Source of the DNA: Macrostomum lignano
Lineage: Eukaryota
DNA: 45,390 nt
Direction of reading: 5' to 3'
Assembly (NCBI GenBank): GCA_002269645.1
Contig: NIVC01001906.1
Location: 1 to 45,390, forward strand
Positions 3,158 through 40,717 of this stretch are shown piece after piece; within the stretch, counting starts at the first letter, position 1, and each line of letters starts with the position of its first letter. The notes under the pieces were generated by a model, which saw only the letters and a list, made by a program, of their open reading frames with translations, was not told the origin of the DNA and searched no databases. Made by a program: the position numbers and the translations under genes.

Positions 3158-6042
3158 ATGCTGCCATTCAGACGCGCACTCCGCTGCTTATGCGCACCGC
3201 TGCACCATTGCGGCTCCTGTTTCTATGTGTGCGGCGAAATCTGCTGCGAGGTGGTTAAAAATCCAGCCTTTCTAGTCGTATTCATCATCTTGTGCATTCA
3301 CAGCACTATATTAATCAGCTATTTCACATTCGCTAATACGGCTAAGCCAAAGCCCGGCCCGACTAAACCAAATCCTCTTGACGCTATTATGGCTCTACCA
3401 GAGTACAACGTGTTCTTAAAAGTGGCTAACGACACGTCATCCGAGTCGGTTCATATTGGCAGCGAAGACTTCAAATATCCGTTGCTAGTTGACATGGTTC
3501 AACTAGTTAGCCGGGTGCGCCACAATCTGTCAGTGAATGTGGCGCCAATAAATCGGCATAATTTTCAATTTCCTATTAATCAGGCCGATCTGTGCAAACC
3601 GTATAAGCTCACTGGAAGGAGTCAGCAGAAGCAGCAGCAGCAGCAGCAACCTGCAATAGTGCTGGTGATTAAATCAGCTCTCAGTCATTTCGATCAACGA
3701 CAATTAATCAGGGAAACTTGGGGCAACTTTGATTGCTGGCCAACTGCTGGCTCAGCTTCTTCTTCATCGTCTTCCTCATCATCATCATCATCATCCAGTT
3801 CCGTAAATAAAGTCCGTCGAGTATTCATGGTTGGCCAGCCGAAATCTGCCGATCCAAAATCTTCGGAGTATGCCGAAAAATTGGCTAAAGAAGTGGCTAA
3901 ATATGGCGACATAGTGCAAGCAGACTTTGTCGATCATTATTTTAATAATACGCTGAAGATGATGTCCAGTTTCAGCTGGATGATTGCTCATTGTCAGGGT
4001 GCGAGGTGAGACACCTTTGGGAGTACCTGTCAGTCTGTTTTATCATTCGAATCCCAATAACCCATCCACAAAATCATTCGAATCCCAATGACCCATCCAC
4101 AAAATCATTCGAATCCCAATGACCCATCCACAAAAGCATTCGAATCCCAATGACCCATCCACAAAAACATTCGAATCCCATTGAGCCATCCACAAAAACA
4201 TTCAAATCCCAAAAACCCATCCACAAAAGCATTCGAATCCCAATGACCCATCCACAAAATCATTCGAATCCCAATGACCCATCCACAAAATCATTCGAAT
4301 CCCAATGACCCATCCACAAAAGCATTCGAATCCCAATGACCCATCCACAAAATCATTCGAATCCCATTGACCCATCCACAAAATCATTCGAATCCCAATG
4401 ACCCATCCACAAAAACATTCGAATCCCAATGACCCATCCACAAAAACATTCGAATCCCAATGACCCATCCACAAAATCATTCGAATCCCAATGACCCATC
4501 CACAAAATCATTCGAATCCCAATGACCCATCCACAAAAACATTCGAATCCCAATGACCCATCCACAAAATCATTCGAATCCCAATGACCCATCCACAAAA
4601 TCATTCGAATCCCAATGACCCATCCCCAAAAACAGTCGAATCCCAATAACCCATCCACAAAAGCATTCGAATCCCAATGACCCATCCACAAAATCATTCG
4701 AATCCCAATGGCCCCTGAAGTTCGAATCGCCGCGACAATCCCAAGTAGATAAAAATGGTTTCCTCACTCGCGCAGATTCGCCTTCTTCTTGGACGACGAC
4801 TACGTTGTCAACCCGTTGAATTTGGTCCGGTTTGCCGATGCCATTCCGCCCGAGTCCTACGCAGGCACAATGGCCGGTTTTGTCTGGCGCAATGCGGCCC
4901 CGGTTCGTCGGGCGCCCAAGCGCAATCCGCAGAGCCGCTGGTTGATATCCTATCGAGAATATCCCTGGCCAATGTATCCGGCTTACGTGTCTGCCGGCGC
5001 GTTTCTGGTGTCTATGCCGGTTATTAAGGACTTCACTATCGCTATGGAATATACTAGGTAGGGAGTCTGCTGCGTTGCTTTGCTGTTAGCCAAGTTGCTG
5101 GTTAATGAACACAAATACTAATAGAAGAAAATAAGTAGTGGAAGAGATGAGGGAAAAGGGCGGAAGAGAGGAGGGAAGGGGCCGAAGAGAGGAGGGAAGG
5201 AGCGAAAGGATGAGAGGAGGGAAGGGGCGGAAGAGAAAAGGGAGGGGCGGAAGAGAGGAGGGAGGGGCGGAGGAGAGAAGGGAAGGGGCGGAAGAGAGGA
5301 GAGAAGGGCGGAAGAGAGGAGAGAAGGGCGGAAGAGAGGAGGGAAGGGCGGAAGAGAGGAGGGAGGGGCGGAAGAGAGGAGGGACGGGGCGGAAGAAAGG
5401 AGGGAGGGGGCGGAAGAGAAGAGGAAAGGGCGGAATAGAGGAGGGAGGGGCCGGAGAGAGAAGGGAAGGGGCGGAAGAGAGGAGGACGGGGCGGAAGAAA
5501 GGAGGGAGGGGGCGGAAGAGAAGAGGAAAGGGGCGGAAGAGAGGAGGGAGGGGCCAGAAAAGAGAAGGGAAGGGGCGGAAGAGAGGAGGGAAGGGCGGAA
5601 TAGAGGAGGGAGGGGCCAGAAAAGAGAAGGGAAGGGGCGGAAGAGAGGAGGGAAGGGCGGAATAGAGGAGGGAGGGGCCAGAAAAGAGAAGGGAAGGGGC
5701 GGAAGAGAGGAGGGAATGGCGGAAGAGAGGAGGGAGGGGGCGCAGGACAGAACAGTTTTATAAGGTGAAAGAAGCTGTGAATTGAATTTCATTGTCAGGT
5801 ACCTCCGCTTCGATGACGTCTTCCTGGGCATCCTGATGCACAAGCTGCGCATTGTGCCGTTGCACGCTGAACGAATTCACAGCTTCAGTCCGGTTTACCC
5901 AGACAGTCCCAGCTTCCCTGGCCTCATCGCCAGCCACGGCTACGCCAGAAAAGCTGATAAAGTCCGAGCCGCTTGGTCGGAGATTCTCAATCGAACTGGA
6001 GCAGAGAACAGATTACCACTAGAGTGCATGCTGTCTATGTAA
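3158..6042 (+). CDS. GT31 family beta-1,3-glycosyltransferase (brainiac/B3GALT-like), 3 exons, 457 aa
   Basis: Exons 3158-4005, 4776-5057, 5799-6042; both introns phase 2, total 1374 nt. N-terminal TM segment, IKSALSHFDQRQLIRETWG, YGDIVQADFVDHYFNNTLK, DxD motif FLDDDY, YPAYVSAGAF, RFDDVFLG. A GTAAGT at 6039 overlaps the stop, so a further exon cannot be excluded. Confidence 0.92.
4042..4712. repeat. 31-bp minisatellite (AAAATCATTCGAATCCCAATGACCCATCCAC) filling GT31 intron 1
   Basis: About 21 tandem copies directly visible. Confidence 0.96.
5140..5742. repeat. Purine-rich minisatellite (GGGGCGGAAGAGAGGAGGGA-like) in GT31 intron 2
   Basis: Directly visible; strong strand asymmetry (G/A on +). 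Confidence 0.93.
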
Positions 6043-7932: not shown

Positions 7933-8446
7933 ATTTAGTTCAACCATTCGTAGGAAGATGTTGTCACGTTTTTCGGGATTTGGGATTTTTTGAAAAGCAA
8001 TATATTCAAGTCTCACTCGTCCCCCTCATGTTTAAAACAAGACCTCCAAAATGTAATAGGCTATATAGCCTCATCATTTCCAAAAAAAGATTTTAACCAC
8101 TCGCTTATTAGTATCTGTTTGTCTGATAGTTGTAATGGAGTCATAATGAATTATTCGAAAACTTGTTTGCAAATTAATCTACTTTTGTCTTCCTTTAATC
8201 TCAGTTTTTATCAGCTGGATCTAAGCAGATTCTATTTTGCTTTCTGTACGAATATAACCTAGATGTATTTCGTCTGTGGTCGCTTTAAAGTTTTGTTGCA
8301 ACGAATATTTCTTTCAGTTAGAAAACACGAAGAAATGAGAAATTATGTAAAATAGACACGGTGCACAGTGCGCTGCTGATGTAAAATTCAGACGTTTTCT
8401 TTTTGTCTTTGTTTTTATCTGGGCTATTGAGTGCACCGATTGCTTA

Positions 8447-8880
8447 TTGGACTGGGGAGTGGGGTGGTTATTTATTGGACTAGGGAGTGGGATGGTTGTT
8501 TATTGAACTAGAGAGTGAGGTGGTTGCTTATTGGACTGGGGAGTGAGGTGGTTATTTATTGGACTAGAGAGTGGGGTGGTTGTTTATTGAACTAGAGAGT
8601 GAGGTGGTTTCTTATTGGATTGGGGAGTGGGGTGGTTATTTATTGGACTAGGAAGTGGGGTGGTTGTTTATTGAACTAGAGAGTGAGCTGGTTGCTTATT
8701 GGACTAGGGAGTGGGATGGTTACTTATTGGACTAGGGAGTGGGGTGGTAGTTTATTGGACTAGGGAGTGGGGTGGTATTTTATTGGACTAGGGAGTGGGG
8801 TGGTAGTTTATTGGACTAGGGAGTGGGGTGGTTTCTTATTAGACTAGGGAGTGGGGTGGTTGCTTTTTGGACTAGAGAAG
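8447..8880. repeat. 28-bp minisatellite (TTATTGGACTAGGGAGTGGGGTGGTTGC)
   Basis: About 15 tandem copies visible. Confidence 0.94.
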
Positions 8881-9534
8881 GGGGTAGTTGTCTGACGCCA
8901 GTCATCTTTATTAGCTACGCCGTCATGTTTAAACTTATTTTTAGTCGCCCCGTTTGATGCTACTATCAAAGTTGCAGTAGTGTAACAAGTATATGCGCCT
9001 CTAATTACATGTATAATTTAAATAATTGAGTTACCATTTGCGATTAGCTCGACACTAGATTTTTTTATGACATACAGATTGCTTGTCATTCACTTGAATA
9101 AGCTTTATTATACGAGTACACAATGTAGGTGTAGCGCCTTCAAGCGCGCCTTTCAAAGTGTATCCTTATCTTTTATGCATGTACATGCAGTTCAACTGGA
9201 CGCAAAGCAAAGCTCAAGAAAGGAATGCAGCGCTGAAAAAACACGTGCTTTTACATTGAAGTGTTTTCGACAGTCTATCTGTAAATTTCACTTATTTTAG
9301 CTGACAATGCAAAATTCTCGCACAGCAATGCAGTGGTGGATTATTAGAATATTCATGGCTAGCTTAGGTTTTAAGGTGTCTGCTTAAAGCAGAAAAAGAG
9401 GTGTGCTTGACTACACGGCTGAACTAAAGTGCTCTTTCACGCGTGAAACGAAGTAGTAAATAGCGTATTTATTACTGTACTTTGTCTTAACGGTCTTGTA
9501 CGCCACTGCACTAGGGGAGGCAGTATATAGGACA

Positions 9535-10040
9535 GTAATGAGAGTTGAGACAGCTAGTGTAGTAGAGACCGCGTGATGAGAGTAGAGTAGAGACTGATGA
9601 GAGTAGAGACCGTGAAGAGAGTAAGGAGACAGCAGGTCGGTACGATGAGAGTAGAGAGTATAGAGACCGCGTGATAAGAGTAGAGAACGTGGTGAAAGTA
9701 GAGAGTAGAGACCTGGTGAGAGTAGAGAGTGGAGAAGTGATGAGAGTAGTGAGACAGTGATGAGAGTAGTGAGACAGTGATGAGAGTAGGGAGACAGTGA
9801 TGAGAGTAGGGAGACAGTGATGAGAGTAGTGAGACAGTGATGAGAGTAGGGAGACAGTGATGAGAGTAGTGAGACAGTAATGAGAGTAGTGAGACAGTGA
9901 TGAGAGTAGGGAGACAGTGATGAGAGTAGTGAGACAGTGATGAGAGTAGTGAGACAGTGCTGAGAGTAGTGAGACAGTGCTGAGAGTAGTGAGACAGTGC
10001 TGAGAGTAGTGAGACAGTGATGAGTGTAGTGAGACACTAG
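9535..10040. repeat. 20-bp minisatellite (GAGACAGTGATGAGAGTAGT), degenerate at its left end
   Basis: Directly visible. Confidence 0.93.
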
Positions 10041-10652
10041 GCCAGTGATGATGACCGCAAGCTGGGAGCAGTGTTGACATACATGTTGCTCACACAAGAG
10101 GCCTGACACGGCACTGGGTGCACTGAATCACATTTTGTGCATATTTGCGTAGGCGTTCGCAGTTTGCAGTTCTTGTGGCACCAATGACTGACAGTGGGCG
10201 CATCAGTACATTTTGCTGAACAATTTCGCATGCTGGGGTTGAGCTTGCATTTTCTTTTATCGTTCTAAGAAAGCTGGCTACTCGACCAGCCTGTGGCATA
10301 GCTATAAAACTAATGAGCTCCACCTACACCTTCCGCTTTGCTCTGGAATTGCCTATTGTGGCCGCCCCAGTCTCTCTCTCCCCCTATATCTCTTGCGTTT
10401 CTCGCCCTCTTGGCTCCTGCCTCCCCCCCCACGCAAATTAATTTTGGAGTCTCCGTCTCATTTTATTTGTGCGTCCAATTAGAAAACGCTGCCTCGTCGT
10501 TTTAGGTCGAAATTTATGCATACGAGTATAAATTGTACGAACTGCAGACCAGACGCATATGTTAATGTGGCCCGCGTCTGCTGGCTAAGAGCGAAACACC
10601 GAACTCTTCTAATTCTTCACCGCTGAAGAAACTTACCGTATATATCAAGGTT

Positions 10653-10886
10653 ATGCCAGCCTCATCAACGATGCTGGCAACATTTCTGCCGACTGTGGCA
10701 CTGCTGCTGCTGGCCAACACGCCAGAGACCAGCGGCTTGAACGTCTGGCTGGACAGATCGACTCTGGCTGGGGTGTTCGACTGGATGCAGTTTATCATGT
10801 CTAGGAAGCCGCACAAGGCCAACCGCTGCAGGCCCAGTGAGTGGCGCCGAGCTGCGTGTCTGTCTGTCTGTCTGTGTGTGTGTCTT

Positions 10887-10935
<49 letters not shown>

Positions 10936-10936
10936 G

Positions 10937-10971
<35 letters not shown>

Positions 10972-10972
10972 G

Positions 10973-11037
<65 letters not shown>

Positions 11038-13169
11038 GACTGTCTGTCTGACTGTCTGTCTTTGTGCATGTCTGTCCGACTATCTGTTGGCATTCATCCA
11101 TTAAGATATATCTAGAAAACCTGTCAGCAAGTCAATACACACCCTGATCGCAATTTCGCCCCTCACACTGCCCCGCAGAGCGCTCCAGCCCTTTTCACCG
11201 GGCCCTCACGCAGCCAACATATCCGCTGGTTGAGAACGGCACGGCACTCCTGTATCCAACGGTGGACTTCGTATCGGCCAGGGGCATCGCTCTGGCATTT
11301 AATGTGAATAAAATCAGATTCAATTGGAGCTCGGCAGCGGGTTCCTACGAGGAGAGTCAGGTTAGTGCAGTGCCAGTGATACTAAGACACATAGGACACT
11401 AAGACACTAAAGACGGACGGACAGACAGACAGATAGACAGACAACGGACAGACAGAAAGACACACAGACAGACAGACAGACAGACAGGCAGGCAGATACA
11501 CAGACAGACAGACAGGCAGCCAGACAGACAAACAAACAAACAGATAGACAGACAGACAGACAGACAGACAAACAAACAAAAAGATAGACAGACAGACAGA
11601 CACTAAGACACTAAGACGTTAAGAGAGAAACTGTACATACATATGAATAGATACTACAAAAATGGCAGACGCTTAATCAATGCACACTCGAAACAATTAA
11701 AGCAGAAACACGTTTCTTCATTGTATCTAGCCGGTTATTTTGACAAATTTTCACGCCGTCAGGTTTATTACCGACTAATTAGATTGAAGTCGCACAACAC
11801 AACAGTTCTGGAGACGCCAATGCTAAGCATTACGACACAAGGATACGTACCAGCCATGCAGGGAGCTGGTGAGAGATTGAAAACTTGCATTTCTACTATA
11901 TGAGTAGCCAGCTAAGACATGGGTTTTTTATTAGATTTTTTCCTTGCAGGATTTTTTATCGAACTGCAATGCACCAATCTCATCTCCGGCATCACCGGAT
12001 TTGAGATGCACATGACTTTCTATTGGCCGCTGCTGGCCAATAGAAGAATGATTGTCATGCAGCGGCACTTTAAAAAGGCCTGCTTGTCAATGGGTGAGCG
12101 ATTTCCTTTAATTTCTGTCTAGTTCAGTAGTCTTGATTCTCTTGAGCAATAATCAATTTGTCTCTGATTCAAGCCAACGTATTTGTCCTAAGTCCAGTCA
12201 ATACATGTGGGCAATGACAATGTGTATTGGCTGTTGATTATTTCAAATAAGTCTGACCAATTCCACTGGTCTTTGAGAAAGTCCAATAGTCTCTGAGCAA
12301 GTCCAATAGTCTCTGACCAAATCCAATAGTCTCTGACCAAATCCAGTAGTCTCTGACCAAATCCAATAGTCTCTGACCAAATCCAGTAGTCTCTGAGCAA
12401 GTCCAGTAGTCTCTGAGCAAGTCCAATAGTCTCTGACCAAATCCAGTAGTCTCTGAGCAAGTCCAATAGTCTCTGAGCAAGTCCAATAGTCTCTGACCAA
12501 ATCCAATAGTCTCTGAGCAAATCCAGTAGTCTCTGACCAAATCCATTAGTCTCTGAGCAAGTCCAATAGTCTCTGAGCAAGTCCAATAGTCTCTGAGCAA
12601 GTCCAATAGTCTCTGACCAAGTCTATTAGTCTCTGAGAAAGTCCAATAGTCTCTGACCAAGTCCATTAGTCTCTGAGAAAGTCCAATAGTCTCTGACCAA
12701 ATCCATTAGTCTCTGAGAAAGTCCAGCAGTCTCTGACCAAGTCCATTAGTCTCTGAGAAAGTCCAGCAGTCTCTGACCAAATCCATTAGTCTCTGAGAAA
12801 GTCCAGCAGTCTCTGACCAAATCCATTAGTCTCTGAGAAAGTCCAGCAGTCTCTGACCAAGTCCATTAGTCTCTGAGAAAGTCCAGCAGTCTCTGACCAA
12901 GTCCATTAGTCTCTGAGAAAGTCCAGCAGTCTCTTCCTAACGAGAGCAACAGCACACATTACCGGACCCACCCGCAAAATTTGCATGCAGCGGACAAGCG
13001 CCGTCAAGCTCGCAAATGCCACTGCCGCAGCGAGTGCCGGCGTCAGCGCAAGAAGAATCGCCTCCGGCATCAGAGGCGACGATACCGCAAATGTCAGAAA
13101 CGATGCCAGAAGCGGTGCAGAAAATCGCCAAGCAGCTGCGGCATCAGTAGAAGCCCGTTTTGGCACTAA
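10653..13169 (+). CDS. Secreted WIF-domain protein (WIF1/shifted-like) without EGF repeats
   Basis: Exons 10653-10836, 11179-11360, 11763-11868, 11950-12093 join in frame (phases 1,0,1). Signal peptide, then [11 protein letters not shown]...YPLVENG...[12 protein letters not shown]...[29 protein letters not shown]...[13 protein letters not shown]...HFKKAC, which parallels the WIF domain and its two Cys. The last exon is ambiguous: 12910-13169 (basic, Cys-rich tail; 291 aa) or 12953-13347 (Ala-rich, then hydrophobic; 336 aa). Confidence 0.82.
10857..11080. repeat. (GTCT)n microsatellite in WIF gene intron 1
   Basis: Directly visible. Confidence 0.96.
11380..11625. repeat. (AGAC)n composite microsatellite with ACACTAAG variants in WIF gene intron 2
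   Basis: Directly visible; reverse-complement relative of the 1740-2880 array. Confidence 0.95.
12280..12935. repeat. 20-bp minisatellite (GTCCAATAGTCTCTGAGCAA) in WIF gene intron 4
   Basis: About 32 copies; the right end alternates two variants as a 40-bp dimer. Confidence 0.96.
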
Positions 13170-13641
13170 CGGAACAATGAGAACACTTGGACTCAACATT
13201 CGATTGCAACCCAGACAGTACCTCGTCAACAATCATTTTGTTGTAATACTACTGCTAATAGCAGCAAATATATCAATCTTTGTTGTATTAACTACCAATT
13301 GGGCAAACCAAAATAAACGATTCTATAGATTTGTTGAGTTTTTTTAAATGTAGATTAATTATTTGTAAATAGAGAAAATAGTTGAAAAAACAGTATATTT
13401 GAAATGAAATGTAATAAATGGGTTTCTAATTATAGGACTAATAATAAGTATAGTATAGTTGCTATAATGCCTACGATTTATTAAAATATTTTGCCACAAT
13501 AGAATATTTTATTTAAGAAGCACACGGCTACGTCATCCTACTAATAGTAGACGAAAAGTGTAAAAATGTATGTTTAATAAATTCTACGGAGGAATCTACA
13601 AAATAATGTTTTTAATAGTCACAGAAATCTCGCTAACGCAA

Positions 13642-16397
13642 TCACATCATGCTGTTGCCCTCGAACGGCCTACATCTGGCTGAAGCGAAATAGGCCTTCA
13701 GCCGGGGCCTCGATTCCATCTGCTGTTTAAATCGGGCCAACAACGGATAAGACGAAATATTGGCCTTCCAAGCGTCCGGGAACTGCGACTCTGTGGCGCG
13801 TAGCACGTGCAACAGGCACAGGTCTACGTAGGTTAAACTGTTGCCAAAACAGTACAGCGAATCGGCGCTCTCTGGCTTGTCAACATTGTTATAACGCAGA
13901 GTGGCTTCAAAGTGCGGCAGGAACTTTGGTATACGATTAGCAATGAAATAATCGATATAGGGCTGGGTGAACTCTTGCTGATTATAGTAGGTTTCGTAAT
14001 GATTTTTGCCGTGAAAGGCTAGCCGACCCTCGGCAATGTAGTCCATCACAGTGGTGCACAGCTGGTCAGCTCGGAATTGATCGGCCTCGCTGGCTGGGAA
14101 CAGGCCGAACTGTTTGCCCAGGTAGCGGCACACTGTGCCAGTCTGGCCGAGCTCGAAATCGCCTGCGGCAAGATTTGCAATCCCATAGAGTAAAGTAACT
14201 ATCATGCTTTCTATACTACTCACTTAAGTACATGTAGCCTACCATCAATCAATTTAACCGCCTGTTCATGATTGTCTAAGACTCTACAAATCTGCTTCAG
14301 TATTACTAGCTGCTCATTACTCCTTCCCGTTCTGCTCATGATTCTTTTTATCTGCTCATGATTCCTTCTCATCTGCTCATGATTCCTTCTTATCTAGTCA
14401 TGATTCCTTCTTATCTAGTCATGATTCCTTCTCATCTGCTCACGATTCCTTCTTATCTAGTCATGATTCCTTCTTATCTGCTTGATTCCTTCTCATCTGC
14501 TCATGATTCCTTCTTATCTAGTCATGATTCCTTCTCATCTGCTCATGATTCCTTCTTATCTAATCATGATTCCTTCTTATCTGCTCATTATTCCTTCTTA
14601 TCTGCTTTTGATTCCTTTTCATCTGCTCATGATTCCTTCTTATCCAGTCATGATTCCTTCTCATCTGCTCATGATTCCTTCTTATCTAGTCATGATTTCT
14701 TCTCATCTGCTCATGATTCCTTCTCATCTGCTCATGATTCCTTCTCATCTGCTCATGATTCCTTCTCATCTGCTCATGATTCCTTCTCATCTGCTCATGA
14801 TTCCTTCTCATCTGCTCATTATTCCTTCTGTAGTGATCCGCTAGTTGATGCTAGGCGTCCCACTTTGTCAGCAGTCTCCCTCGCCCTCGCCCTGGGTTGC
14901 TGTCTGCCGCTGGTCAGCTTCCCACCCCCCTTGGCCCGTCTGTTGCTGCCCTTGGCCTGTTCTGCCCTTCTGCGTCTCTGTTCTCGGCCCTCAGCTTCTC
15001 TGCTGTGGGCTGTCTCTGTTTCGTTCCCGTCCCGTTTTCCTCTGTCATGTGAGCAAGTCACATGACAGACTCTGCGTTCTTCGAGTCCTAAAGTGCAGTA
15101 AACATGTTTACTGCACTCGTTGGCCCTGTTTACCGGGAGAATCACGTGCTTTCGGACCCCTCCCTTCTCTAAGGAGAGGAGTGACTCATGTTGCTAAAAA
15201 TAGCAACTGAGTCACAGCCGCGTGTACTCTGGCCGGAGACCTCAAGTGACGTCAGTTCTAAAAATAGAACGAGTCACGAGGTCTTGCGCGCACTGAGACC
15301 CTGCCTCGAGATCTCAAGTGACGTCAGTTCTAAAAATAGAACAAGTCACGAGGTCTTGTGCGTGGGTGTTTCCCGGCTATAAATAGGACCCCTCTCCCCT
15401 TGTTTCCGTCAAGGAATTGATTGGCTTCTTATCTGCGGAGAATTCACTTAGATCCCGTGTGCGTCAGTGTCTAACTAAGTGCCCTTTGCGTACTGAATCC
15501 GTTTGTACTGGTCTGACTGAGACCCCACTAAAGCCCAAGCCTAAGGGAGGCTAACACTGCCTTCCCAGCCACCCCTGAGCCCGGCGGGGATCTGCTGATC
15601 AGGACGCCTTGTTCGTTAATCTGCAAATCTGCACGCTGTGCTGAGTTCGTTGACTTGTTTATTTCGTTCCGACGGGAAGCTCACCTCATCGAAGGCCGAG
15701 ACCTGAAGGAACTGGTGGCAGCACTACCTACGCTACTGAGCGTTGACAGAACTTCCCACTGAAGAGGCTCGAGTCATAAGGTCATCCGCAAGGGCCTAAT
15801 CCGGGAAGCAAACAGCCTGTACTTCACTGGTGGCAGCGGTGGGATTCAAAGACCTACCAGGCCACCCCGAGAAAACCCCATAAGTATTTCACTTCTTATC
15901 TGCTTATGATTCCTTCTCATATAGTCATGATTCCTTCTCATCTAGTCATGATTCCTTCTCATATAGTCATGATTCCTTCTCATCTAGTCATGATTCCTTC
16001 TTATCTGCTCATGATTCCTTCTCATATAGTCATGATTCCTTCTCATCTGCTCATGATTTTTCCCGCACTGCTCATGGGTCATGGCTGTTTCTATTTCTAT
16101 CTATACGTGACTGTGACTGCCTCTGCCAATGGCTGTTCTCACTGCTCAAAATCGTTTCCCTCTGTTTATTCTTTAAAAAAATATTTTACACTTATGCTCT
16201 CACTCACCCTTCTTTATCATAGGCACAGCGAACACGGGCCAACCAACCTTACTTTGGCCTTTAAATTTATCAGTCAGCGGCTGGGGATCGTTCACTTCTT
16301 TGTAGGCGACTCCGGCCTCTTCAAACATGAGGCGAACGAATTCGCCTCGACCGGCTAGAGGCCAGTACCAGAGCTCCCACTCAGCTTCGGATGACAT
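13642..16397 (-). CDS. Glutathione S-transferase (Tyr-type), 2 exons, 236 aa
   Basis: Exons 16397-16208 and 14162-13642; phase-1 intron, total 711 nt. WELWYWPLAGRGEFVRL, FAVPMIKKG-DFELGQT, LTYVDL, RPRLKAYFAS. Confidence 0.93.
14330..16060. repeat. 21-bp minisatellite (ATGATTCCTTCTCATCTGCTC) in the GST intron, split by a solo LTR (14330-14828 and 15892-16060)
   Basis: The same unit resumes in register after the insertion. Confidence 0.95.
14829..15891 (+). mobile_element. Solo LTR, 1063 bp (Ty3/Gypsy-like by 4-bp TSD)
   Basis: TG...CA termini (TGTAGTG / TATTTCA); 4-bp TSD CTTC; TATAAA at 15378; duplicated enhancer-like segment; no coding capacity. Orientation inferred from the TATA box. Confidence 0.8.
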
Positions 16398-17135: not shown

Positions 17136-20100
17136 TCAGGCCTTAATTCTCTCCGCCTCATCGTTGGGCAAATCTCGAGTCCACTGGACCAGGTCCTCAG
17201 CCTCCACTTCGTCTTCTTCATTGTCAAACTGATGCAGCTGAGAACGCTGATGAGGCGGCTGCGGCTGCTTTTTGATGTCGCTCATTAGAGACCGGCTTGT
17301 TGAGACGTCTGCATGATTTTTTTATCAGTGAATGACAATTCAGCAATTTTTGGTAAATCAATATTTCTATATCTAAGTGATTAAGTATCTGAGAAGATAA
17401 CCCAACAACTGAGGATCTGGGAGGCTGGCATAGCAACTGAGGATCTGGGAGGCTGGCATAGCAACTGACACTCTGGGAGGCTGGCCCAGCAACTGACACT
17501 CTGGGAGGCTGGCCCAGCAACTGACACTCTGGGAGGCTGGCCCAGCAACTGAGGATCTGAGAGGCTGGCCCAGCAACTGACACTCTGGGAGGCTGGTGCC
17601 CCAGCAACTGAGGATCTAGGAGGCTGGCCCAGCAACTGAGGATCTGGGAGGCTGGCCCAGCAACTGAGGATCTGGGAGGCTGGTGTCCCAGAAACTGAGG
17701 ATCTGGGAGGCTGGCCCAGCAACTGAGGATCTGGGAGGCTGGCCCAGAAACTGAGGATCTGTGGGGCTGGCCCAGCAACTGAGGATCTGGGAGGCTGGCC
17801 CAGAAACTGAGGATCTGGGAGGCTGGCCCAGCAACTGAGGATCTGGGAGGCTGGCCCAGAAACTGAGGATCTGGGGGGCTGGCCCAGCAACTGAGGATCT
17901 GGGAGGCTGGCCCAGAAACTGAGGATCTGGGGGGCTGGCCCAGCAACTGAGGATCTGGGAGGCTGGCCCAGAAACTGAGGATCTGGGAGGCTGGCCCAGA
18001 AACTGACCCTCTGGGAGGCTGGCCCAGCAACTGAGGATCTGAGAGGCTGGCCCAGCAACTGACACTCTGGGAGGCTGGTGCCCCAGAAACTGAGGATCTG
18101 GGAGGCTGGCCCAGAAACTGAGGATCTGGGAGGCTGGCCCAGAAACTGAGGATCTGGGGGGCTGGCCCAGCAACTGAGGATCTGGGAGGCTGGCCCAGAA
18201 ACTGAGGATCTGGGGGGCTGGCCCAGAAACTGAGGATCTGGGGGGCTGGTCCAGCAATTAATGAGATGAGATGAATCGAAGATGATAAAATATGTTTTTG
18301 CTAGAAATTCGAGAATCAGGATATTTACGAGCCCTGTGTAAACAGCGAGGTAAAAAAGATAAAAGTTCAGAAAAAACACTCACTGGAGGCGTGCCTCTGG
18401 GCCAAATAGATACGCCGCATCTGATCCAACCGCTCAAGATTTGATTCCAACTGTTTCTGCTGCTGTTTCTGCTTTGGCTGGCCAGAATTTCCGTATTTTA
18501 AACGACGGTGACTGAAGTTAATTGGCCAGCAAAAATTAAGATAGTTTCAAAAGTTATTAAGCTACTAATCTAGTAGGTAGTAGCTAGCCTGCACACTATT
18601 ACCTTTCAATCTTAGCTGACAAAGTGTCGGAGTGCCATATGGAAGCTGAAAAAAATTAAATGAGAAACATAATTAAACTTAATCTTAAATTCTGAATCCT
18701 ATAGACAAATACGTCGTATATATCCTGGTCCAACCACATAGACAAATGTACATTCGGCCCTCAAGTCCCATGCTAAAATGTACACTCTTTTCCTACCAAG
18801 CCTCAGACAAATGTACACCCTACCCTCAAGTCCCATATACACATGTACACTCTGGCCCCCAAGCCCCATAGATAAATGTACATTCTGCCCACCAAGCTCG
18901 ATCGAAAAATGTACCCTAAATGTCCCCAACCCCTATAAAACCGACCAGGATTGAACGGTTCTCGATCGACAGTCTTAGAAGTAGCCAATTTACTCCAATC
19001 GGCGTGGTACGTTTCAAAGCTAATCTTTCTTTGGGATGGTTTCTGCGGCTTAGGCGGCGGTCGGTTCAAATAGTCCAAATCGTATTCGATCTCTACGGGT
19101 TGACGCACACCGCCAGACGCATCGGGATTCTCGTCGTCGCCCGATGGAGAGAATGGTCGCAGCTTGTCTGGGGAGTCTGGAAGATTTAATTTGAAAATAA
19201 AAAAACTGAAATATACTTGTTAAACAAAGGTGTAACTAATTTAAGCATGGATTCATGTAAAGTCAGGTTTGAGTCAGGTTTCCTCAGATAATATTAAGAA
19301 ACAATATCCGATAGTGGTGGTGGTAAATAGCATGATTTCGAATAAAAATCACTTATCTAAGAAGTCATGTTAGTAATTTACTCTGACATTAATAGATTTC
19401 TTATAGTATTACTAATAAGGTAGATATGATTCCACAGTAATTAATAAAAGCTTCTATTAATGATAATCGGCGCACTTCCGCGAATTCAATAGCTTTTATT
19501 TTCATCTGTACTTAATTAACTGTTTTGTCAAAGTGACCTTTTCCATAGACAATGTACACTCTTGCCCTGCCCCTGCCAAGCCCCATATACAAATGTACAC
19601 TCTACCTTCAAGCCCTATAGACAAATGTACACTCTGCCCACAAAGCCCCATAGACAAATGTACACTCTGGCCCCCTAAGCGCCATAGTCCCATAGGCCCG
19701 GATGGAATGGGGTGGGTGAGTTTATTATCGATTAGCTGGTAGTCCACCAACCCGAGTTTCCTAACCTCCCGTCAACTTATATCTATCGCTGCTGGTCATG
19801 TACAGTCACAGGGGGTGGGTGGGTGTTTTTTTATCGATTTTATTATCGGCCTTAAACCTCTTTCCTACCCCGCCAACTTCACTTAATCGCTGCTGGCTAG
19901 ATGGGGGTGGGTGACTGTTTTATCGATCTGGTTGGGCCGTCAACCAATCCTTCCTCTACCCTAACTATATTTATCTTATCGCGAAAGTGCGAATGGGTTC
20001 AAGCAAAGTTAACGCGACCTTAATATTACCAACCAGCTTTTCATTTTATCTCGGTCTCAATGTATGTATGCGGGACTTTAAATATTGTGCTAATTTGGCT

Positions 20101-21902
20101 TGTATTCAACATCGTTAAATTAGCTAAAATACTGGCACATTCAACAAACAAACAAAAATAATTTTCTATTTCACTGAAAAAATTACACATAGAAACTACG
20201 ATGCCAGCTCGTAAAGGCTTTGCGGGCGGATTTGGTGGAGAAATGGCGACTTCTGTAGCTAAAAAGACAATAAATGTGATTCTTTATTAAAATTAAAACA
20301 TGATAATGTAGCTGAAAATGACAATAATTAACTAACACTAACCTAAAAAAACAAAATACAAGACGCGAACTCACTTTCAACAATTTGGCTCATTTGTACG
20401 CACTGAGCAACTACGCTTTTATATTGCTCATAATCAGTGCTCATCATTTCGGCAGCCTCGGGATTCAATATTAGCTGAGCATTTGGCTCAGTTAGCTGCT
20501 GTTGAATGCTGCTCAATAAATCGGCTAAAGAAACTGACGCGTTCCATTTCTGCGGATCGTCCAGATAAGGACATGCAACACGACCAGTGTCCGGTTCAAC
20601 TGCGAATGGCAAAGCGAAAATGTAGATTGGTACTAGGGATTGCAATCTCGGGATCCCGGGATCCCGAAATCCCGGGATTTGGGGTCCCGAATCCTTTTTA
20701 AACAAATTACTTTTATAATCAACGCACAAGTCGTAGGACTACTGTTAGTACTATAAAAATTAATGTTGCAGGTATTTTTTAACAGAGCTCTTGAAAAACT
20801 ACACAAAGATCAATAATAGCTCGCAATTAAACTAAACGAGTATTGTTTTGGTAATAAAATACATTTTTGACTGAACTAACCTCAGGTCATTACCCATTAC
20901 ATTACCCTAATACACCCTACTCACTAAGTAGTTAAAAAATAATCTTTGTTTGACCTAGAGGACATCTTAGCACTATATTAATAAATAATAAAAACATCTC
21001 TTACCATTAGGATGAAATGGCACAGTCACAAAATTAGCCTCAGGTGGCACATAATTGTAGCTCTCGGAGAATCTTAGTCTGAGCTTCAATACGCCACCGT
21101 CCCACAGAGTGTCTGGTAGGCCTTTGATCTTTGCCGACAGTGAAAATAGATTGCCGGCCCTGGTTGGATAGACTCGGATGCCCTGAATTTTGAAGGATTG
21201 GGCCGATTCCCAATGAGGTTAGAGGGCGATTCCCAATGAGGTTAGAGGGCGATTCCCAATGAGGTTAGAGGGCGATTCCCAATGAGGTTAGAGGGCGATT
21301 CCCAATGAGGTTAGAGAGCGATTCCTAATGAGGTTAGAGGGCGATTCCCAATGAGGTTAGAGGGCGATTCCTAATGAGGTTAGAGGGCGATTCCCAATGA
21401 GGTTAGAGGGCGATTCCCAATGAGGTTAGAGGGCGATTCCCAATGAGGTTAGAGGGCGATTCCCAATGAGGTTAGAGGGCGATTCCTAATGAGGTTAGAG
21501 GGCGATTCCCAATGAGGTTAGAGGCCGATTCCCAATGAGGTTAGAGGGCGATTCCCAATGAGGTTAGAGGGCGATTCCTAATGAGGTTAGAGGGCGATTC
21601 CCAATGAGGTTAGAGGGCGATTCCCAATGAGGTTAGAGGGCGATTCCCAATGAGGTTAGAGGGCGATTCCCAATGAGGTTAGAGGGCGATTCCTAATGAG
21701 GTTAGAGGGCGATTCCTAATGAGGTTAGAGGGTGATTCCTAACGAGGTTAGAGGGCGATTCCTAATGAGGTTAGATGGCGATTCCCGGTAGATTTCCAAA
21801 GTACTGATTCAATAGACTTACCTTAACAGGATTACGTTCAAATTTTAGCAATTCCTGTTCAATGAGCAGGTAAGCTCGGGAATGCACCACAGATGATGCC
21901 AT
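17136..21902 (-). CDS. UBE2U: Ubiquitin-conjugating enzyme E2 U-like, 7 exons, 352 aa
   Basis: Exons 21902-21822, 21182-21005, 20599-20375, 19176-18946, 18645-18603, 18511-18384, 17308-17136; phases all match, total 1059 nt. HSRAYLLIEQE, VPFHPNVEPDTGRVACPYLDDPQKWN, ISFETYHADWSKLATSK and EAEDLVQWT resemble UBE2U motifs as I recall them, in both the UBC domain and the tail. Confidence 0.9.
17400..18255. repeat. 28-bp minisatellite (GCTGGCCCAGCAACTGAGGATCTGGGAG) in UBE2U intron 6
   Basis: About 30 copies visible. Confidence 0.96.
18697..18925. repeat. Degenerate ~34-bp repeat (CCCATAGACAAATGTACACTCT core) in UBE2U intron 4
   Basis: About 6 diverged copies. Confidence 0.8.
19540..19690. repeat. 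Same ~34-bp repeat family in UBE2U intron 3
   Basis: About 4 copies of the CCCATAGACAAATGTACACTCT core, same orientation as 18697-18925. Confidence 0.8.
21205..21787. repeat. 23-bp minisatellite (GATTCCCAATGAGGTTAGAGGGC) filling UBE2U intron 1
   Basis: About 25 near-identical copies. Confidence 0.97.
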
Positions 21903-22329: not shown

Positions 22330-23500
22330 ATCTACCGACCTGAATCTTTATCTCTACTGACCTGCGCCTCTGTCTCTACTGACCTGCATCTCTATCTCTT
22401 CTGACCTGCATTTCTATCTATTCTGACCTGAATCTCTATCTCTACTGACCTGCGCCTCTCTCTCTACTGACCTGCATATCTGTCTCTACTGACCTGCGCC
22501 TTTCTCTCTACTGACCTGCGCCTCAATCTCTACTGACCTGCGCCTTTCTCTCTACTGACCTGCGCCTCAATCTCTACTGACCTGCGCCTTTCTCTCTACT
22601 GACCTGCGCCTCTATCTCTACTGACCTGCGCCTCTATCTCTACTGACCTGCGCCTCTATCTCTACTGACCTGCGCCTTTCTCTCTACTGACCTGCGCCTC
22701 TATCTCTACTGACCTGCGCCTTTCTCTCTACTGACCTGCGCCTCTATCTCTACTGACCTGCGCCTCTATCTCTACTGACCTGCATCTCTGTCTCTACTGA
22801 CCTGCATCTCTGTCTCTACTGACCTGCGCCTTTCTCTCTACTGACCTGCGCCTCTATCTCTACTGACCTGCGCCTTTCTCTCTACTGACCTGCGCCTCTA
22901 TCTCTACTGACCTGCGCCTTTCTCTCTACTGACCTGCGCCTCTATCTCTACTGACCTGCGCCTTTCTCTCTACTGACCTGCGCCTCTATCTCTACTGACC
23001 TGCGCCTTTCTCTCTACTGACCTGCGCCTCTATCTCTACTGACCTGCGCCTTTCTCTCTACTGACCTGCGCCTCTATCTCTACTGACCTGCGCCTTTCTC
23101 TCTACTGACCTGCGCCTCTATCTCTACTGACCTGCGCCTCTATCTCTACTGACCTGCGCCTTTCTCTCTACTGACCTGCGCCTCTATCTCTACTGACCTG
23201 CATCTCTATCTCTACTGACCTGCATCTCTATCTCTTCTGACCTGCGCCTCTGTCTCTACTGACCTGCATCTCTATCTCTTCTGACCTGCCTCTCTATCTC
23301 TACTGACCTGCATCTCTATCTCTACTGACCTGCATCTCTATCTCTTTTGACCTGCATCTCTATCTCTTCTGACCTGCGCCTCTGTCTCTACTGACCTGCA
23401 TCTCTATCTCTTCTGACCTGCCTCTCTATCTCTACTGACCTGCATCTCTATCTCTACTGACCTGCATCTCTATCTCTACTGACCTGCATCTCTATCTACT
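22330..23500. repeat. 22-bp minisatellite (CTACTGACCTGCGCCTCTATCT)
   Basis: About 53 copies; homogeneous alternating centre, diverged edges. Confidence 0.97.
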
Positions 23501-24903: not shown

Positions 24904-27900
24904 TCAGAATGAATATGACGACAGCCAATACATTCCGCGCAGACGGCTACGCAATTCGGCCTTCTGAGCATCCGTGACATTGAGCCAAAGCGGCACCATG
25001 AGTCGCTCCTCAAGCAGCAGGTGATCTTCATAGAAATCAGCCAGCCCGTTAACAGCGCCGGCCAGAGATTTTCTAGCGTCGCCGTTGGCGCCACCGGAAG
25101 CGCCGGCAGCGATTGCCTCAGTGGCTTTCTTCACTACTTCGTTGAACTTGCCATGCTGATTGTCGATCTCTTGCCAGAACTGAGCGAACTGAGGATAGGC
25201 CTCTTTGAAGTAGGGGAACAGTTGAGCGTCTTCGAACTCCGAATGGGGAGCGTTCTTTTTTAGAAATCCCTGCAAATGACTGTCCACGTCGGCGACCTGT
25301 TGAACAAAAAATTAAATGAGAAAAAAATTTATAATCCTACTTTTAGTAGACAAAAAGACTTTTTTTCAATAAGTTTGCGATTTACAAAAAGAGTAATAAA
25401 AATGAGGATTCTTAGAAATGACTACTAGGGCGGCTATTGGAAAGGGTAACGGGGGCGATTCTTAGAAAAGGTATCAGAGGGAATTATTAGAAGAAACGGT
25501 ATCAGAGGGAATTCTTGGAAACGGTATCAGAGGGAATTCTAAGAAACGGTATTAGAGGGAATTCCTAGAAACGGTATCAGAGGGAATTCTAAGAAACGGT
25601 ATCAGAGGGAATTCTAAGAAACGGTATCAGAGGGAATTCTTAGAAACGGTATCAGAGGGAATTCTTATAAAAGGTATCAGAGGGAATTATTAAAAGAAAC
25701 GGTATCAGAGGGGATTTTTGGAAATGGTATCAGGGGGGGTTCTTGAAAATGATACTAGGGGCGATCCTCTAATGGGATATTAGAACTCTCTTGTAAAAGG
25801 CAAAGCGATCTGATGAATTTACGCAGAGATTGAAAGAGCCTTTGCCCCACCTGAGCGGCAGTCAAGTCGGCATCGCCGGCCACAGTCTGGCGCAGGGCGG
25901 TCAGCCGCTTTCTAAATCCATCGTGAGAGTACATCCACATGCGCAACAGGCCCTTATTGGGATGCTGCTGCCAGACACCGCGCCAGAAGTCGCTGCGAAC
26001 GGCCAACTTCAGCATAGCGGCCAGATCAGCGTCAGACACTTCAGCGGCCGGAGGCACACCCAGCTGGGCGAGATGTTCGATTAGTTTCTCACGGGACATG
26101 CTCTCAATGTTGGCTTCAACAACTTGACGGCTGCTGTTGCCAGCCGGCAGGCCCAGCCGGACGCCTTGAATAGCGGCGTCGCGTGTTTCGTCGGCTTCGT
26201 TCGACGATTTGTTGTTGTCGCCGGCTCCGCCAGCTTCGGCGCGCTGGCGTACGTCGGCAAGAGTGTAGCTCTGTTGGGCACCCTGTAATTGACAGTTTAT
26301 ATAAGTTTAGTAACCGCTTCCGGACATTTGCCCTCCGGCACTTCCCCTCCGGCACTTGCCCTCCGGCACTTCCCCTCGGCGGCGTTTGCCCTCCGGACAT
26401 TTGCCCTCCGGGACATTTCCCCTCCGGACATTTGCCCTCCGGACATTTCCCCTCGGGGACATTTGCCCTCGGGGACATTTGCCCTCCGGACATTTCCCCT
26501 CCGCACATTTGCCCTCTGCAAATTTACCCCCTCGCACATTACTCACCTCACCTCCTCCTGTACCCACCCGTCGTTCCTCCAGCACCAACCTCATCCTCCC
26601 GCCTCTTGCATCCATCAGGTTCTTCTCCAGCCAACAACTCATCCTTTTCTAGTAAGCAATATATACCCGCGCCCTACCCTATCCCCAGCCTTACCTGTAC
26701 TTTTCCAGAGGGGAAATGTCCGGAGGGCAAATGTCCGGAGGGGAAATGTCCCCGAGGGCAAATGTCCCCGAGGGCAAATGTCCGGAGGGCAAATGTCCGG
26801 AGGGCAAATGTCCCCGAGGGCAAATGTCCTCGAGGGCAAATGTCCGGAGGGGAAATGCCGGAGGGCAAATGTCCGGAGGGCAAATGCCGGAGGGCAAATG
26901 TCCGGTAGCCTTTAGTAACATTGCTAGATGGCTGAATATTTTGAGTCTGAAAGTTCCAGGACTGAGAGACTGATTCTAAGCTGTCTCTAGGCTAGTTTTG
27001 GGTGCTCTTTAAGGGAGTTAGAGATGCACTTGAGACAGGATGAGTGCCCGATGATACTCTTGGGTGAGTGCCAGATGATACTATTGGATAAGTGCCGGAT
27101 GATACTCTTGGGTGAGTGCCAGATGATACTCTTGGGTGAGTGCCAGATGATACTCTTGGATGAGTGCCGGAGGATATTCTTCAGATGCCAGAATATACGC
27201 TAATTCAGATGCCATAAAGATACTCTTTAGATTCCATAAAGATACTCTTTAGATGTCATAAAGATACTCTTTAGATGCCATAAAGATACTCTTCAGATGC
27301 CATAAAGATACTCTTCAGATGCCATAAAGATACTCTTCAGATGCCATAAAGATACTCTTCAGATGCCAGAATATACTCTTCAGTTGCCAGATGATACTAT
27401 TGGATAAGTGCCAGATGATACTATTGGATAAGTGCCAGATGATACTATTGGATAAGTGCCAGATGATACTATTGGATAAGTGCCAGATGATACTCTTGGG
27501 TGAGTGCCAGATGATACTCTAGGATGAGTGCCGGAGGATATTCTTCAGATGCCAGAATATACGCTAATTCAGATGCCATAAAGATACTCTTCAGATGCCA
27601 TAAAGATACTCTTCAGATGCCAGAATATACTCTTCAGTTGCCAGATGATGATACTCTTGGATGAGTGCCAGATGATACTCTTGGATGAGTGCCAGATGAT
27701 ACTCTTGGATGAGTGCCAGATGATACTCTTGGATGAGTGCCAGATGATACTCTTGGATGAGTGCCAGATGATACTCTTGGATGAGTGCCAGATGATACTA
27801 TTGGATAAGTGCCAGATGATACTATTGGATAAGTGCCAGATGATACTATTGGATAAGTGCCAGATGATACTATTGGATAAGTGCCAGATGATACTCTTGG

Positions 27901-32899: not shown

Positions 32900-33535
32900 C
32901 CAGATTTTAAACCCCTGGGAATCCACATTGTAAATTCCTGGGAATCCACATTGTAAACCCCTGGGAATCCAGATTAAACCCTGGAATTCCAGATTAACCC
33001 CTGGGAATCGACATTAAACCCTGAGAATCCACATTAACCCCTCGGAATCCAGATTAACCCCTGGGAATCCACATTGTAAACCCCTGGGAATCAACATTAA
33101 ACCCTGGAATTCCAGATTAACCCCTGGGAATCAACATTAAACCCTGGAATTCCAGATTAACCCCTGGGAATGAACATTAAACCCTGGAATTCCAGATTAA
33201 CCCCTGGGAATCAACATTAAACCCTGGGAATCAACATTAAACCCTGGAATTCCAGATTAACCCCTGGGAATCAACATTAAACCCTGGGAATCAACATTAA
33301 ACCCTGGGAATCCACATTAAGCCTTGGGGATTCACATTAACCCCTGGGAATCCACATTGTAAACCCCTGGGAATCAACAGTAAACCCTGGGAATCCACAT
33401 TAACCCCTGGGGATTCAGATTAACCCCTGGGAATCCAGATTAACCCCTGGGAATCCAGATTAACCCCTGGGAATCCACATTAAGCCCTGGAAATTCACAT
33501 TAATCCCTGGGAATCCAGATTCTAAACCCCTGGAA
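32900..33535. repeat. ~20-23-bp minisatellite (AACCCCTGGGAATCCAGATT)
   Basis: Directly visible. Confidence 0.94.

Positions 33536-34059: not shown

Positions 34060-40717
<6,658 letters not shown>

Follow-up and report, generated by a model that had tools for sequence, protein, structure and literature searches.

A short flatworm WIF-domain protein with a conserved basic, cysteine-patterned tail instead of EGF repeats

Does the flatworm Macrostomum lignano have a WIF-domain protein with neither the epidermal growth factor (EGF)-like repeats of WIF1 and Shifted nor the kinase of RYK, and if so, what does the protein have instead? The question is raised by a locus on contig NIVC01001906.1 of assembly GCA_002269645.1, of which positions 1 to 45,390 of the forward strand make up the window, that is, the whole 45,390-nucleotide stretch of DNA analysed here. 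The head-tail axis in flatworm regeneration is set by Wnt gradients, and to our knowledge few secreted Wnt antagonists are known in flatworms. An original prediction, made from the letters of the window, had read at this locus a signal peptide and a complete WIF domain over four exons, followed by one short terminal exon for a strongly basic, cysteine-rich tail. Splice sites, Pfam, and AlphaFold2 with Foldseek all agreed with this layout, the signal peptide being a predicted one. Together with its relatives in Macrostomorpha, Cestoda, and Trematoda, the protein forms a flatworm family that would fill the WIF1/Shifted niche without EGF repeats, and we are highly confident of both the architecture and the family membership.

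Reading of the splice sites gave a gene of five exons on the (+) strand, with the ATG at 10653, four GT-AG introns, and a product of 264 amino acids (aa). Exon 1 (10653-10836, 184 nt, 3' phase 1) contains the start codon, the predicted signal peptide (about residues 1-28, window 10653-10736, where the only hydrophobic 19-mer lies), the first WIF strand and helix, and the start of an insertion that holds Cys59. The rest of this insertion and the central WIF strands (LVENG, IRFNWSS) are encoded by exon 2 (11179-11360, 182 nt, 3' phase 0), further WIF strands by exon 3 (11763-11868, 106 nt, 3' phase 1), and the last WIF strands, with Cys165 and Cys202, by exon 4 (11950-12093, 144 nt, 3' phase 1), which ends KACLSM. 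The terminal exon 5 (12991-13169, 179 nt including the stop codon TAA at 13167-13169) encodes the basic Cys-patterned tail, whose conserved core K214-R249 (13014-13121) begins KCHCRSEC. The reading frame of the tail is fixed by the phase at the last junction. Other frames of the last exon, ending at 13150 or 13347, were rejected on splice phase, the annotated protein, and conservation. The end coordinate 13347 of the original prediction is thus the stop of an unused frame, while the tail it favoured is in the true frame, as indicated by the splice phase, the transcript-based annotation, and a cysteine motif kept in distant flatworms. The stop at 13169 and the drop in G+C content after it were also borne out, the last coding exon having 58.7% and the 472-bp spacer behind it (13170-13641) 28.8%. 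The first AATAAA past the stop (13312-13317, (+) strand) is a candidate polyadenylation signal, judged from the sequence. On the 3' side the gene is bounded by a convergent glutathione S-transferase (GST) gene, which ends at 13642, 472 bp from the WIF stop, as had been foreseen; the open reading frame of its terminal coding exon (13642-14223, (-) strand) matches GST_C_3 at E = 1.5e-16. Upstream, a TATAAAA at 10303-10309, 344 bp before the start codon and past the minisatellite at 9573-10036, may be a core promoter element.

Is this gene model complete? Over its entire length the 264-aa product matches, with 100% identity, the GenBank entry 'hypothetical protein BOX15_Mlig030313g1 [Macrostomum lignano]'. 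The M. lignano genome annotation was made from genome-guided RNA-seq assemblies (StringTie/TACO, TBONE, TransDecoder) (PMC5730564), and the gene model is therefore transcript-based. Since the RNA-seq-based annotation gives the same 264-aa protein, the transcripts appear to hold no additional EGF or kinase exons. BOX15_Mlig030313g1 sits on a different contig of the same assembly, NIVC01001145.1. Window positions 10049-14634, including the GST gene, which is annotated there as well, are collinear with this sister locus (L001 9397-14333), with 96-99% identity in non-coding DNA. In the window intron 1 has 342 bp, vs 589 bp in the sister locus, intron 4 has 897 vs 1036 bp, and the lengths of micro- and minisatellites differ. 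In the coding sequence there are four differences in 795 coding bases, all synonymous, and all splice sites are kept; so small a number of changes, none of them non-synonymous, cannot prove selection. Identity of the two loci was rejected, as the sister locus is a duplicate or allele with other intron repeat lengths. In this M. lignano line (DV1), 180 Mb of duplicated blocks with at least 95% identity have been reported (PMC5730564), and together with the 96-99% identity this indicates that the window copy stems from duplication, is an allele, or is the same gene in another assembly.

The orthologue of the tapeworm Anoplocephala perfoliata, which lies in a chromosome-level assembly, also has five GT-AG exons (190, 137, 100, 144, and 188 nt). 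The phases 1, 0, 1, 1 are common to the two genes compared, introns 2, 3, and 4 fall at homologous places in the alignment, and the length of exon 4, 144 nt, is the same in both, while intron 1 has the same phase at a position about ten residues apart within the variable insertion. In both genes the tail is a terminal exon of its own with the stop directly after it, and no annotated feature was found within 3.7 kb downstream of the Anoplocephala gene. A truncated or mis-joined model, with EGF or kinase exons elsewhere or with a wrong last exon or frame, might be suspected given that M. lignano assemblies are repeat-rich and redundant, and that frameshifts or chimeric joins affect the older UniProt models of this family. 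A truncated or mis-joined model has a negligible chance of being right, given the transcript-based annotation, the near-identical second copy with intact splice sites and four synonymous changes only, the convergent GST gene close behind the stop, the window free of any EGF-like pattern, and at least 10 orthologues of the same length. The conserved five-exon structure, with nothing annotated downstream in Anoplocephala, rules truncation out, and a mis-annotated model is effectively excluded. All these results showed that the locus is a transcribed five-exon gene, neither an assembly artefact nor a one-off.

Does the gene encode a genuine WIF domain, and nothing else that is known? In the Pfam check that had been proposed, WIF (PF02019) matched residues 101-202 on profile positions 38-131, at 45.9 bits (cut-off 25; E = 6.1e-12), and no other family, EGF and kinase included, was found in the 264-aa protein even at E <= 10. 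An EGF-like cysteine pattern was found in none of the six frames of the 45-kb window, and tblastn of the window revealed no second WIF and nothing RYK-like, so the WIF protein without EGF repeats or kinase was confirmed. The N-terminal part, outside the match to the hidden Markov model, resembles the LYLWID…ARVL start of WIF-1. An AlphaFold2 model was built on the family alignment, with a mean predicted local distance difference test (pLDDT) score of 74.3, a predicted template modelling (TM) score of 0.64, and pLDDT of about 90 in the WIF core as well as in the exon 4 region; a model from the single sequence was set aside (pLDDT 36.7). In the retained model, strand 30-34 and helix 35-49 lie ahead of the β-sandwich. 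When it was compared with the PDB using Foldseek, all six matches at E <= 0.001 were WIF domains (E 4e-10 to 7e-9, the next at E = 4e-3), namely human WIF-1 (2d3j, 2ygn, 2ygo, 2ygp, 2ygq) and Drosophila Drl-2 (7me5), over ~180 aligned columns. Target TM-scores were 0.48-0.77, with 0.64-0.77 for WIF or WIF+EGF1 constructs and 0.48 for the longer WIF-EGF1-3. By both sequence and modelled fold, the protein is a member of the WIF-domain superfamily with a predicted complete WIF fold. The insertion that holds Cys59, ~25 residues between helix 1 and the next WIF strand, is not in WIF-1 and was modelled with low confidence. The cysteines C165 and C202 bracket the WIF domain and are invariant in the family, as judged, like all invariance below, from an 11-sequence alignment. 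The sole hydrophobic 19-residue window is N-terminal and is followed by TSG/LNVW, a layout common to all orthologues; hydropathy of the whole protein gave no hydrophobic 19-mer beyond the N-terminus, and hence no transmembrane or GPI-like end. We infer that the protein is probably secreted.

Is this architecture confined to one worm? An exhaustive HMMER search with residues 1-208 against 1.84 billion representatives gave seven proteins at E <= 0.001, which were the protein itself, three broken older M. lignano models, an M. lignano paralogue (P0003; 295 aa, 37% identity, UniRef 'WIF domain-containing protein'), a 254-aa protein of the tapeworm Rodentolepis nana, and Trichinella RYK. A cluster look-up and two profile searches added the tapeworms Hymenolepis diminuta, H. 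microstoma, H. weldensis, Anoplocephala perfoliata, Taenia solium ('Protein shifted'), Hydatigera taeniaeformis, Mesocestoides corti, and Schistocephalus solidus, together with the flukes Opisthorchis felineus and Calicophoron daubneyi. In all, WIF-only proteins are encoded by at least 12 species or paralogues of flatworms, from Macrostomum, seven genera of tapeworms, and two flukes, and as members occur in both Macrostomorpha and Neodermata, the family spans one of the deepest flatworm splits. Full-length models are 230-295 aa long, one 195-aa Mesocestoides model ends just past the WIF domain, and WIF is the sole Pfam family in 11 of the 11 aligned members. Invariant residues include L29, W32, and R35 in exon 1, and Y125, S132, N134, L138, P141, L143, G149, and P152 in exon 3. 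Members of this flatworm short WIF family, the protein of the window among them, combine a length of 230-295 aa, the WIF domain, a basic tail with K-C-x-C-R-x2-C…C-x3-C, and the insertion cysteine. The architecture of the original prediction is real, but it is not an isolated oddity, since the flatworm-wide family was already in databases, with names such as 'WIF domain-containing protein' and 'Protein shifted' in use.

The WIF part of Rodentolepis shares 94-95% identity with that of Taenia or Anoplocephala, vs 62-75% between tapeworm orders or between the two flukes. Sequence comparison suggests strong functional constraint on the WIF part in cyclophyllidean tapeworms. Three UniProt entries, A0A1I8FHG7, A0A1I8JL22, and A0A1I8JQS8 (P0002, P0004, and P0005), carry the misleading automatic names 'Velvet', 'DUF4708', and 'ZP domain-containing'. 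They were rejected as longer relatives, being frameshifted or chimeric predictions of the uncorrected older M. lignano assembly, and were left out of the alignments; they still hold recognisable WIF and basic-tail segments of the paralogue. Two further hits, P0019 and P0021, were uninformative, being read-through predictions from short contigs of tapeworm-like sequence.

To which of the known WIF proteins is the family closest? With WIF1/Shifted it shares a predicted N-terminal signal sequence followed directly by the WIF domain, the best fold match by E-value (4e-10), and a presumed role as a secreted extracellular modulator; C202 aligns with the domain-closing Cys (KTC) of human WIF-1, and C165 with the Cys of FPCLGK. 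The family profile also matched human WIF-1 best (54 bits, E = 1.3e-13), followed by Trichinella RYK (46.6 bits) and Drl-2 (30.6 bits), in a comparison of three reference sequences. Unlike WIF1/Shifted, the flatworm protein has none of the five glypican-binding EGF-like repeats, the family having instead a basic C-x-C-x3-C…C-x3-C tail of 45-111 aa, and it carries the ~25-residue Cys-holding insertion, which in terms of the fold lies between the first helix and the second strand. RYK/Derailed/LIN-18 proteins likewise have one WIF domain that is not followed by EGF repeats, and reach comparable scores, and the WIF structure of the Drl-2 ectodomain has the lowest root-mean-square deviation (rmsd) to the model (3.2 Å, target TM-score 0.76). 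The flatworm protein differs from them in having neither a transmembrane helix nor a (pseudo)kinase, as shown by hydropathy, Pfam, and tblastn.

The likeness to RYK raises another explanation, according to which the family began as the WIF ectodomain of RYK/Derailed, set free by loss of the transmembrane helix and kinase, and serves as a decoy in RYK-type reception of Wnt. Besides the Drl-2 structure, it can draw on the single-sequence search, in which Trichinella RYK was the best non-flatworm match (35.7 bits vs 17.6 bits for human WIF-1), and on the family profile, which still scores RYK at 46.6 bits. However, it is human WIF-1 that tops this profile, and the proposal is about origin more than mechanism and overlaps with that of a WIF1/Shifted-like binder set out below; we consider it rather improbable. 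As the flatworm protein lacks the EGF repeats of WIF1/Shifted and the transmembrane helix and kinase of RYK, it is placed in neither group, and WIF plus a basic twin-CX3C tail is a third architecture.

What, then, is the tail? In the M. lignano protein it has 60 residues, 25 of them K or R, and an isoelectric point (pI) of 11.8. Tails of all family members, 45-111 aa long, have a pI of 10.2-12.0 and 13-45 K+R. Six tail residues are invariant (K214, C215, C217, R218, C221, and R235), and C244 and C248, which form the second C-x3-C, as well as C59 of the insertion, are nearly so, being missing from the P0003 model alone; another model of this paralogue (P0005) does hold the insertion cysteine. 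The conserved tail pattern is K-C-x-C-R-x2-C … C-x3-C, and five conserved cysteines in the tail plus one in the insertion make an even number, to which the Macrostomum protein adds C240 and C256 in the tail. The original prediction of a strongly basic, Cys-rich tail holds for basicity and cysteines, but the tail is not simply polybasic, its conserved core being C-x-C-x3-C … C-x3-C. Likewise, the extreme K/R content is found in Macrostomum (42%), whose copies are the most extreme, but it is not family-wide, with about 30% in tapeworms. In cyclophyllidean tapeworms identity is 94-95% for the WIF part and 73-79% for the tail core, and between Macrostomum and Neodermata it is 24-42% for either part; the tail changes faster than the WIF part, yet under clear constraint.

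In the AlphaFold2 model the tail forms helices 205-228 and 234-250 with a short loop between them, and one C-x3-C lies on each helix. The tail alone gave only noise in Pfam (BSMAP, CCT, CD59; E 0.016-2.8; one displayed score far under the cut-off). When the tail profile was compared with the PDB, the best-fitting chains were vicilin-buried peptide 6wqj (E = 0.12) and luffin P1 6o3s (E = 2.6), both non-significant, which we take to be CX3C…CX3C helical hairpins held by two disulfides. The flatworm tail is most likely a basic helix-loop-helix hairpin stapled by two disulfides, as the model and the motif suggest, and the fifth conserved tail cysteine, C215, would possibly be bonded to C59 of the insertion. 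With these plant alpha-hairpinins the tail shares the cysteine spacing, the two predicted helices with a short loop, and a high Arg/Lys content. The plant peptides, however, are seed peptides released from precursors and show no significant similarity to the tail, whereas the flatworm motif is the C-terminal module of an animal extracellular protein and has an extra conserved C-x-C cysteine, so the likeness is best taken as an analogy of shape and not a family relationship.

The weak resemblance to CX3C hairpin peptides also bears on the idea that the tail is a pro-region or released peptide, with furin-type convertases freeing a bare WIF domain; the freed small, cationic, disulfide-stapled hairpin may then have a role of its own, for example an antimicrobial one like that of plant hairpin peptides. 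Motifs of the R-x-K/R-R type are indeed present, RRQRKK and RHQRRR in the tail and RPKR in the insertion. Tapeworm and fluke tails, however, keep the cysteine motif with far fewer dibasic sites, and cleavage therefore cannot be the conserved function. In addition, the odd number of tail cysteines, with one more in the insertion, suggests a covalent tie to the domain, and the hairpin-peptide matches are themselves non-significant. We give this idea very little credence.

Small basic C-terminal modules that hold a protein on heparan sulfate are known from the exon-encoded heparin-binding domain of VEGF165 and the basic tail of R-spondin. The flatworm tail resembles them as a short Cys-containing and/or basic C-terminal segment, encoded by terminal exon(s) and joined to a ligand-binding domain. 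It differs in that there is no sequence relationship, and its heparin binding is putative.

What could such a protein do? Vertebrate WIF1 binds Wnts via its WIF domain, its EGF-like repeats bind glypican heparan-sulfate proteoglycans, and these glypican-binding EGF domains are needed for full Wif1 activity (PMC3285576). Drosophila Shifted, the WIF1 orthologue, acts on Hedgehog and has EGF-like repeats that also bind glypicans and are required for full activity (PMC3285576). Because the EGF domains are needed for full Wif1 activity, an EGF-less WIF protein plausibly needs a substitute, and heparan-sulfate binding with Wnt/Hedgehog modulation is a reasonable proposal. The explanation we prefer, with a rough probability of 55%, is that the protein is secreted and, like WIF1/Shifted, binds lipid-modified Wnt or Hedgehog, with the basic hairpin standing in for the glypican-binding EGF repeats. 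Outside the cell, the WIF domain would capture a lipid-modified morphogen, a Wnt or possibly a Hedgehog, and the basic hairpin, taking over from the EGF array, would keep the complex on heparan-sulfate proteoglycans or matrix; this tethering would set how far and how strongly the signal acts. The tethering and the choice of ligand are put forward with slightly less than even confidence. More tentatively still, flatworms as a phylum might have swapped the EGF array of WIF1 for a basic hairpin unrelated to it, encoded by one exon, stapled by disulfides, and joined covalently to the WIF insertion. If true, flatworms would have arrived independently at a structural way of tethering a Wnt/Hedgehog-binding domain to heparan sulfate, and the protein may be the sole antagonist of the WIF1 type in animals renowned for regeneration under Wnt control.

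The same WIF1/Shifted kinship would also allow a carrier, which mainly binds Hedgehog or another lipid-modified ligand and moves or stabilises it, extending its range instead of blocking Wnt, with the basic tail giving a transient contact with glypicans. The action of Drosophila Shifted on Hedgehog argues for this, as does the effect that Wif1's WIF domain can also have on Hedgehog according to PMC3285576 and PMC8699845; moreover, some tapeworm members are named 'Protein shifted', and sequence cannot separate Wnt from Hedgehog specificity. Full promotion of Hedgehog, however, needed Shifted's own EGF domains (PMC3285576), which are absent here, and published work groups 'wif' with Wnt components, on expression grounds only (PMC6225667; bioRxiv 10.1101/2022.08.31.506052). 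A carrier of this kind is unlikely in our judgement.

Several points weigh against a secreted, heparan-sulfate-tethered WIF1/Shifted-like binder. Ligand specificity is not readable from sequence, and the WIF domain may descend from WIF1 or from RYK, with the profile preferring WIF-1 and the single sequence RYK. Signal-peptide cleavage was judged by eye and by hydropathy. The tail has a pLDDT of only 52-81 in the AlphaFold2 model, its disulfide scheme was guessed from how the motif is spaced and where helices are predicted, and the two hairpin-peptide matches are driven by cysteine spacing and composition. Convertases could remove the tail at the several R-x-K/R-R motifs of its polybasic stretch.

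How does the family relate to what has been published? Flatworm papers list 'wif' as a presumed Wnt repressor, on the strength of its name alone (PMC6225667, PMC11805424, bioRxiv 10.1101/2022.08.31.506052). A planarian 'wif' labels the muscle of the dorsal midline, with enrichment in wnt1+ cells (bioRxiv 10.1101/2022.08.31.506052), and the tapeworm 'WIF' HmN_000932100 is upregulated in the scolex-neck region alongside wnt1, wnt11b, and an sfrp-like gene (PMC6225667). WIF has been reported as present in Hymenolepis, Echinococcus, Schistosoma, and Schmidtea and as not found in Fasciola, and Dickkopf and Cerberus as absent from parasitic flatworms (PMC11805424). The published 'wif' expression would be compatible with a patterning role, and these genes are putative counterparts of the aligned proteins; HmN_000932100 is presumed to correspond to sequence P0010. 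In the open-access text searched, nothing was found on a WIF domain in Macrostomum or on the locus tag BOX15_Mlig030313g1, and neither the missing EGF repeats nor the conserved tail is described. What was already known is that the sequences are public under generic or borrowed names and that 'wif' is used in flatworm papers; to judge from the open-access text, the EGF-less architecture and the conserved tail are new.

The WIF gene is real, conserved, and testable in M. lignano, a transgenic worm amenable to RNA interference, while its biology is inferred and the gene class was to be expected. If the tail does the job of the EGF array, the protein would be a compact natural case of module swapping in a morphogen modulator, and a small tool (~235 aa when mature) for the interplay of WIF domain, ligand, and proteoglycan. 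If the tail does not bind heparan sulfate, the family would still need an explanation other than the textbook WIF1 mechanism.

The introns around exon 2 hold two microsatellites, which form an inverted repeat. A (TGTC)n array of ~58 units lies in intron 1 (10857-11087) and provides the left arm, and an (AGAC)n array of ~48 units in intron 2 (11411-11602), the reverse complement of the first, provides the right arm. The arms (10856-11043 and 11444-11631) are ~188 nt long, 82% complementary, and flank exon 2, and their pairing in the pre-mRNA could loop out this exon, which might favour exon skipping or circular RNA. The arrangement may also be due to chance, as TGTC arrays are common in this genome, for example a 1.1-kb array at 1729-2877. 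Exon 2, with 182 nt, is not a multiple of 3. Most of intron 4 is taken up by a 20/40-bp minisatellite (12252-12934) with 17 copies of a 40-mer.

The other genes around the locus have no obvious functional link to the WIF gene. Besides the GST gene, they encode an OCIA-domain protein (651-1136, (+) strand), a galactosyltransferase (Galactosyl_T; 3158-4009, (+) strand), a TIP49/RuvB-like ATPase, of which an exon was found at 34923-35375 on the (-) strand, and a ubiquitin-conjugating enzyme, annotated in the sister locus (L001 15303-20132 region). The window as a whole is unusually dense in long minisatellite arrays with units of 20-31 bp, many of them intronic or intergenic. Examples, apart from the intron 4 array at 12252-12934, are 4042-4714, 5140-5742, 8440-8891, 9573-10036, and 14310-14829, with further arrays at 17401-18257, 21204-21786, 22331-23497, 27038-30115, and 32907-33521. 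Several of the arrays make long spurious open reading frames on both strands, for example at 9411-10109 and 14358-15065.

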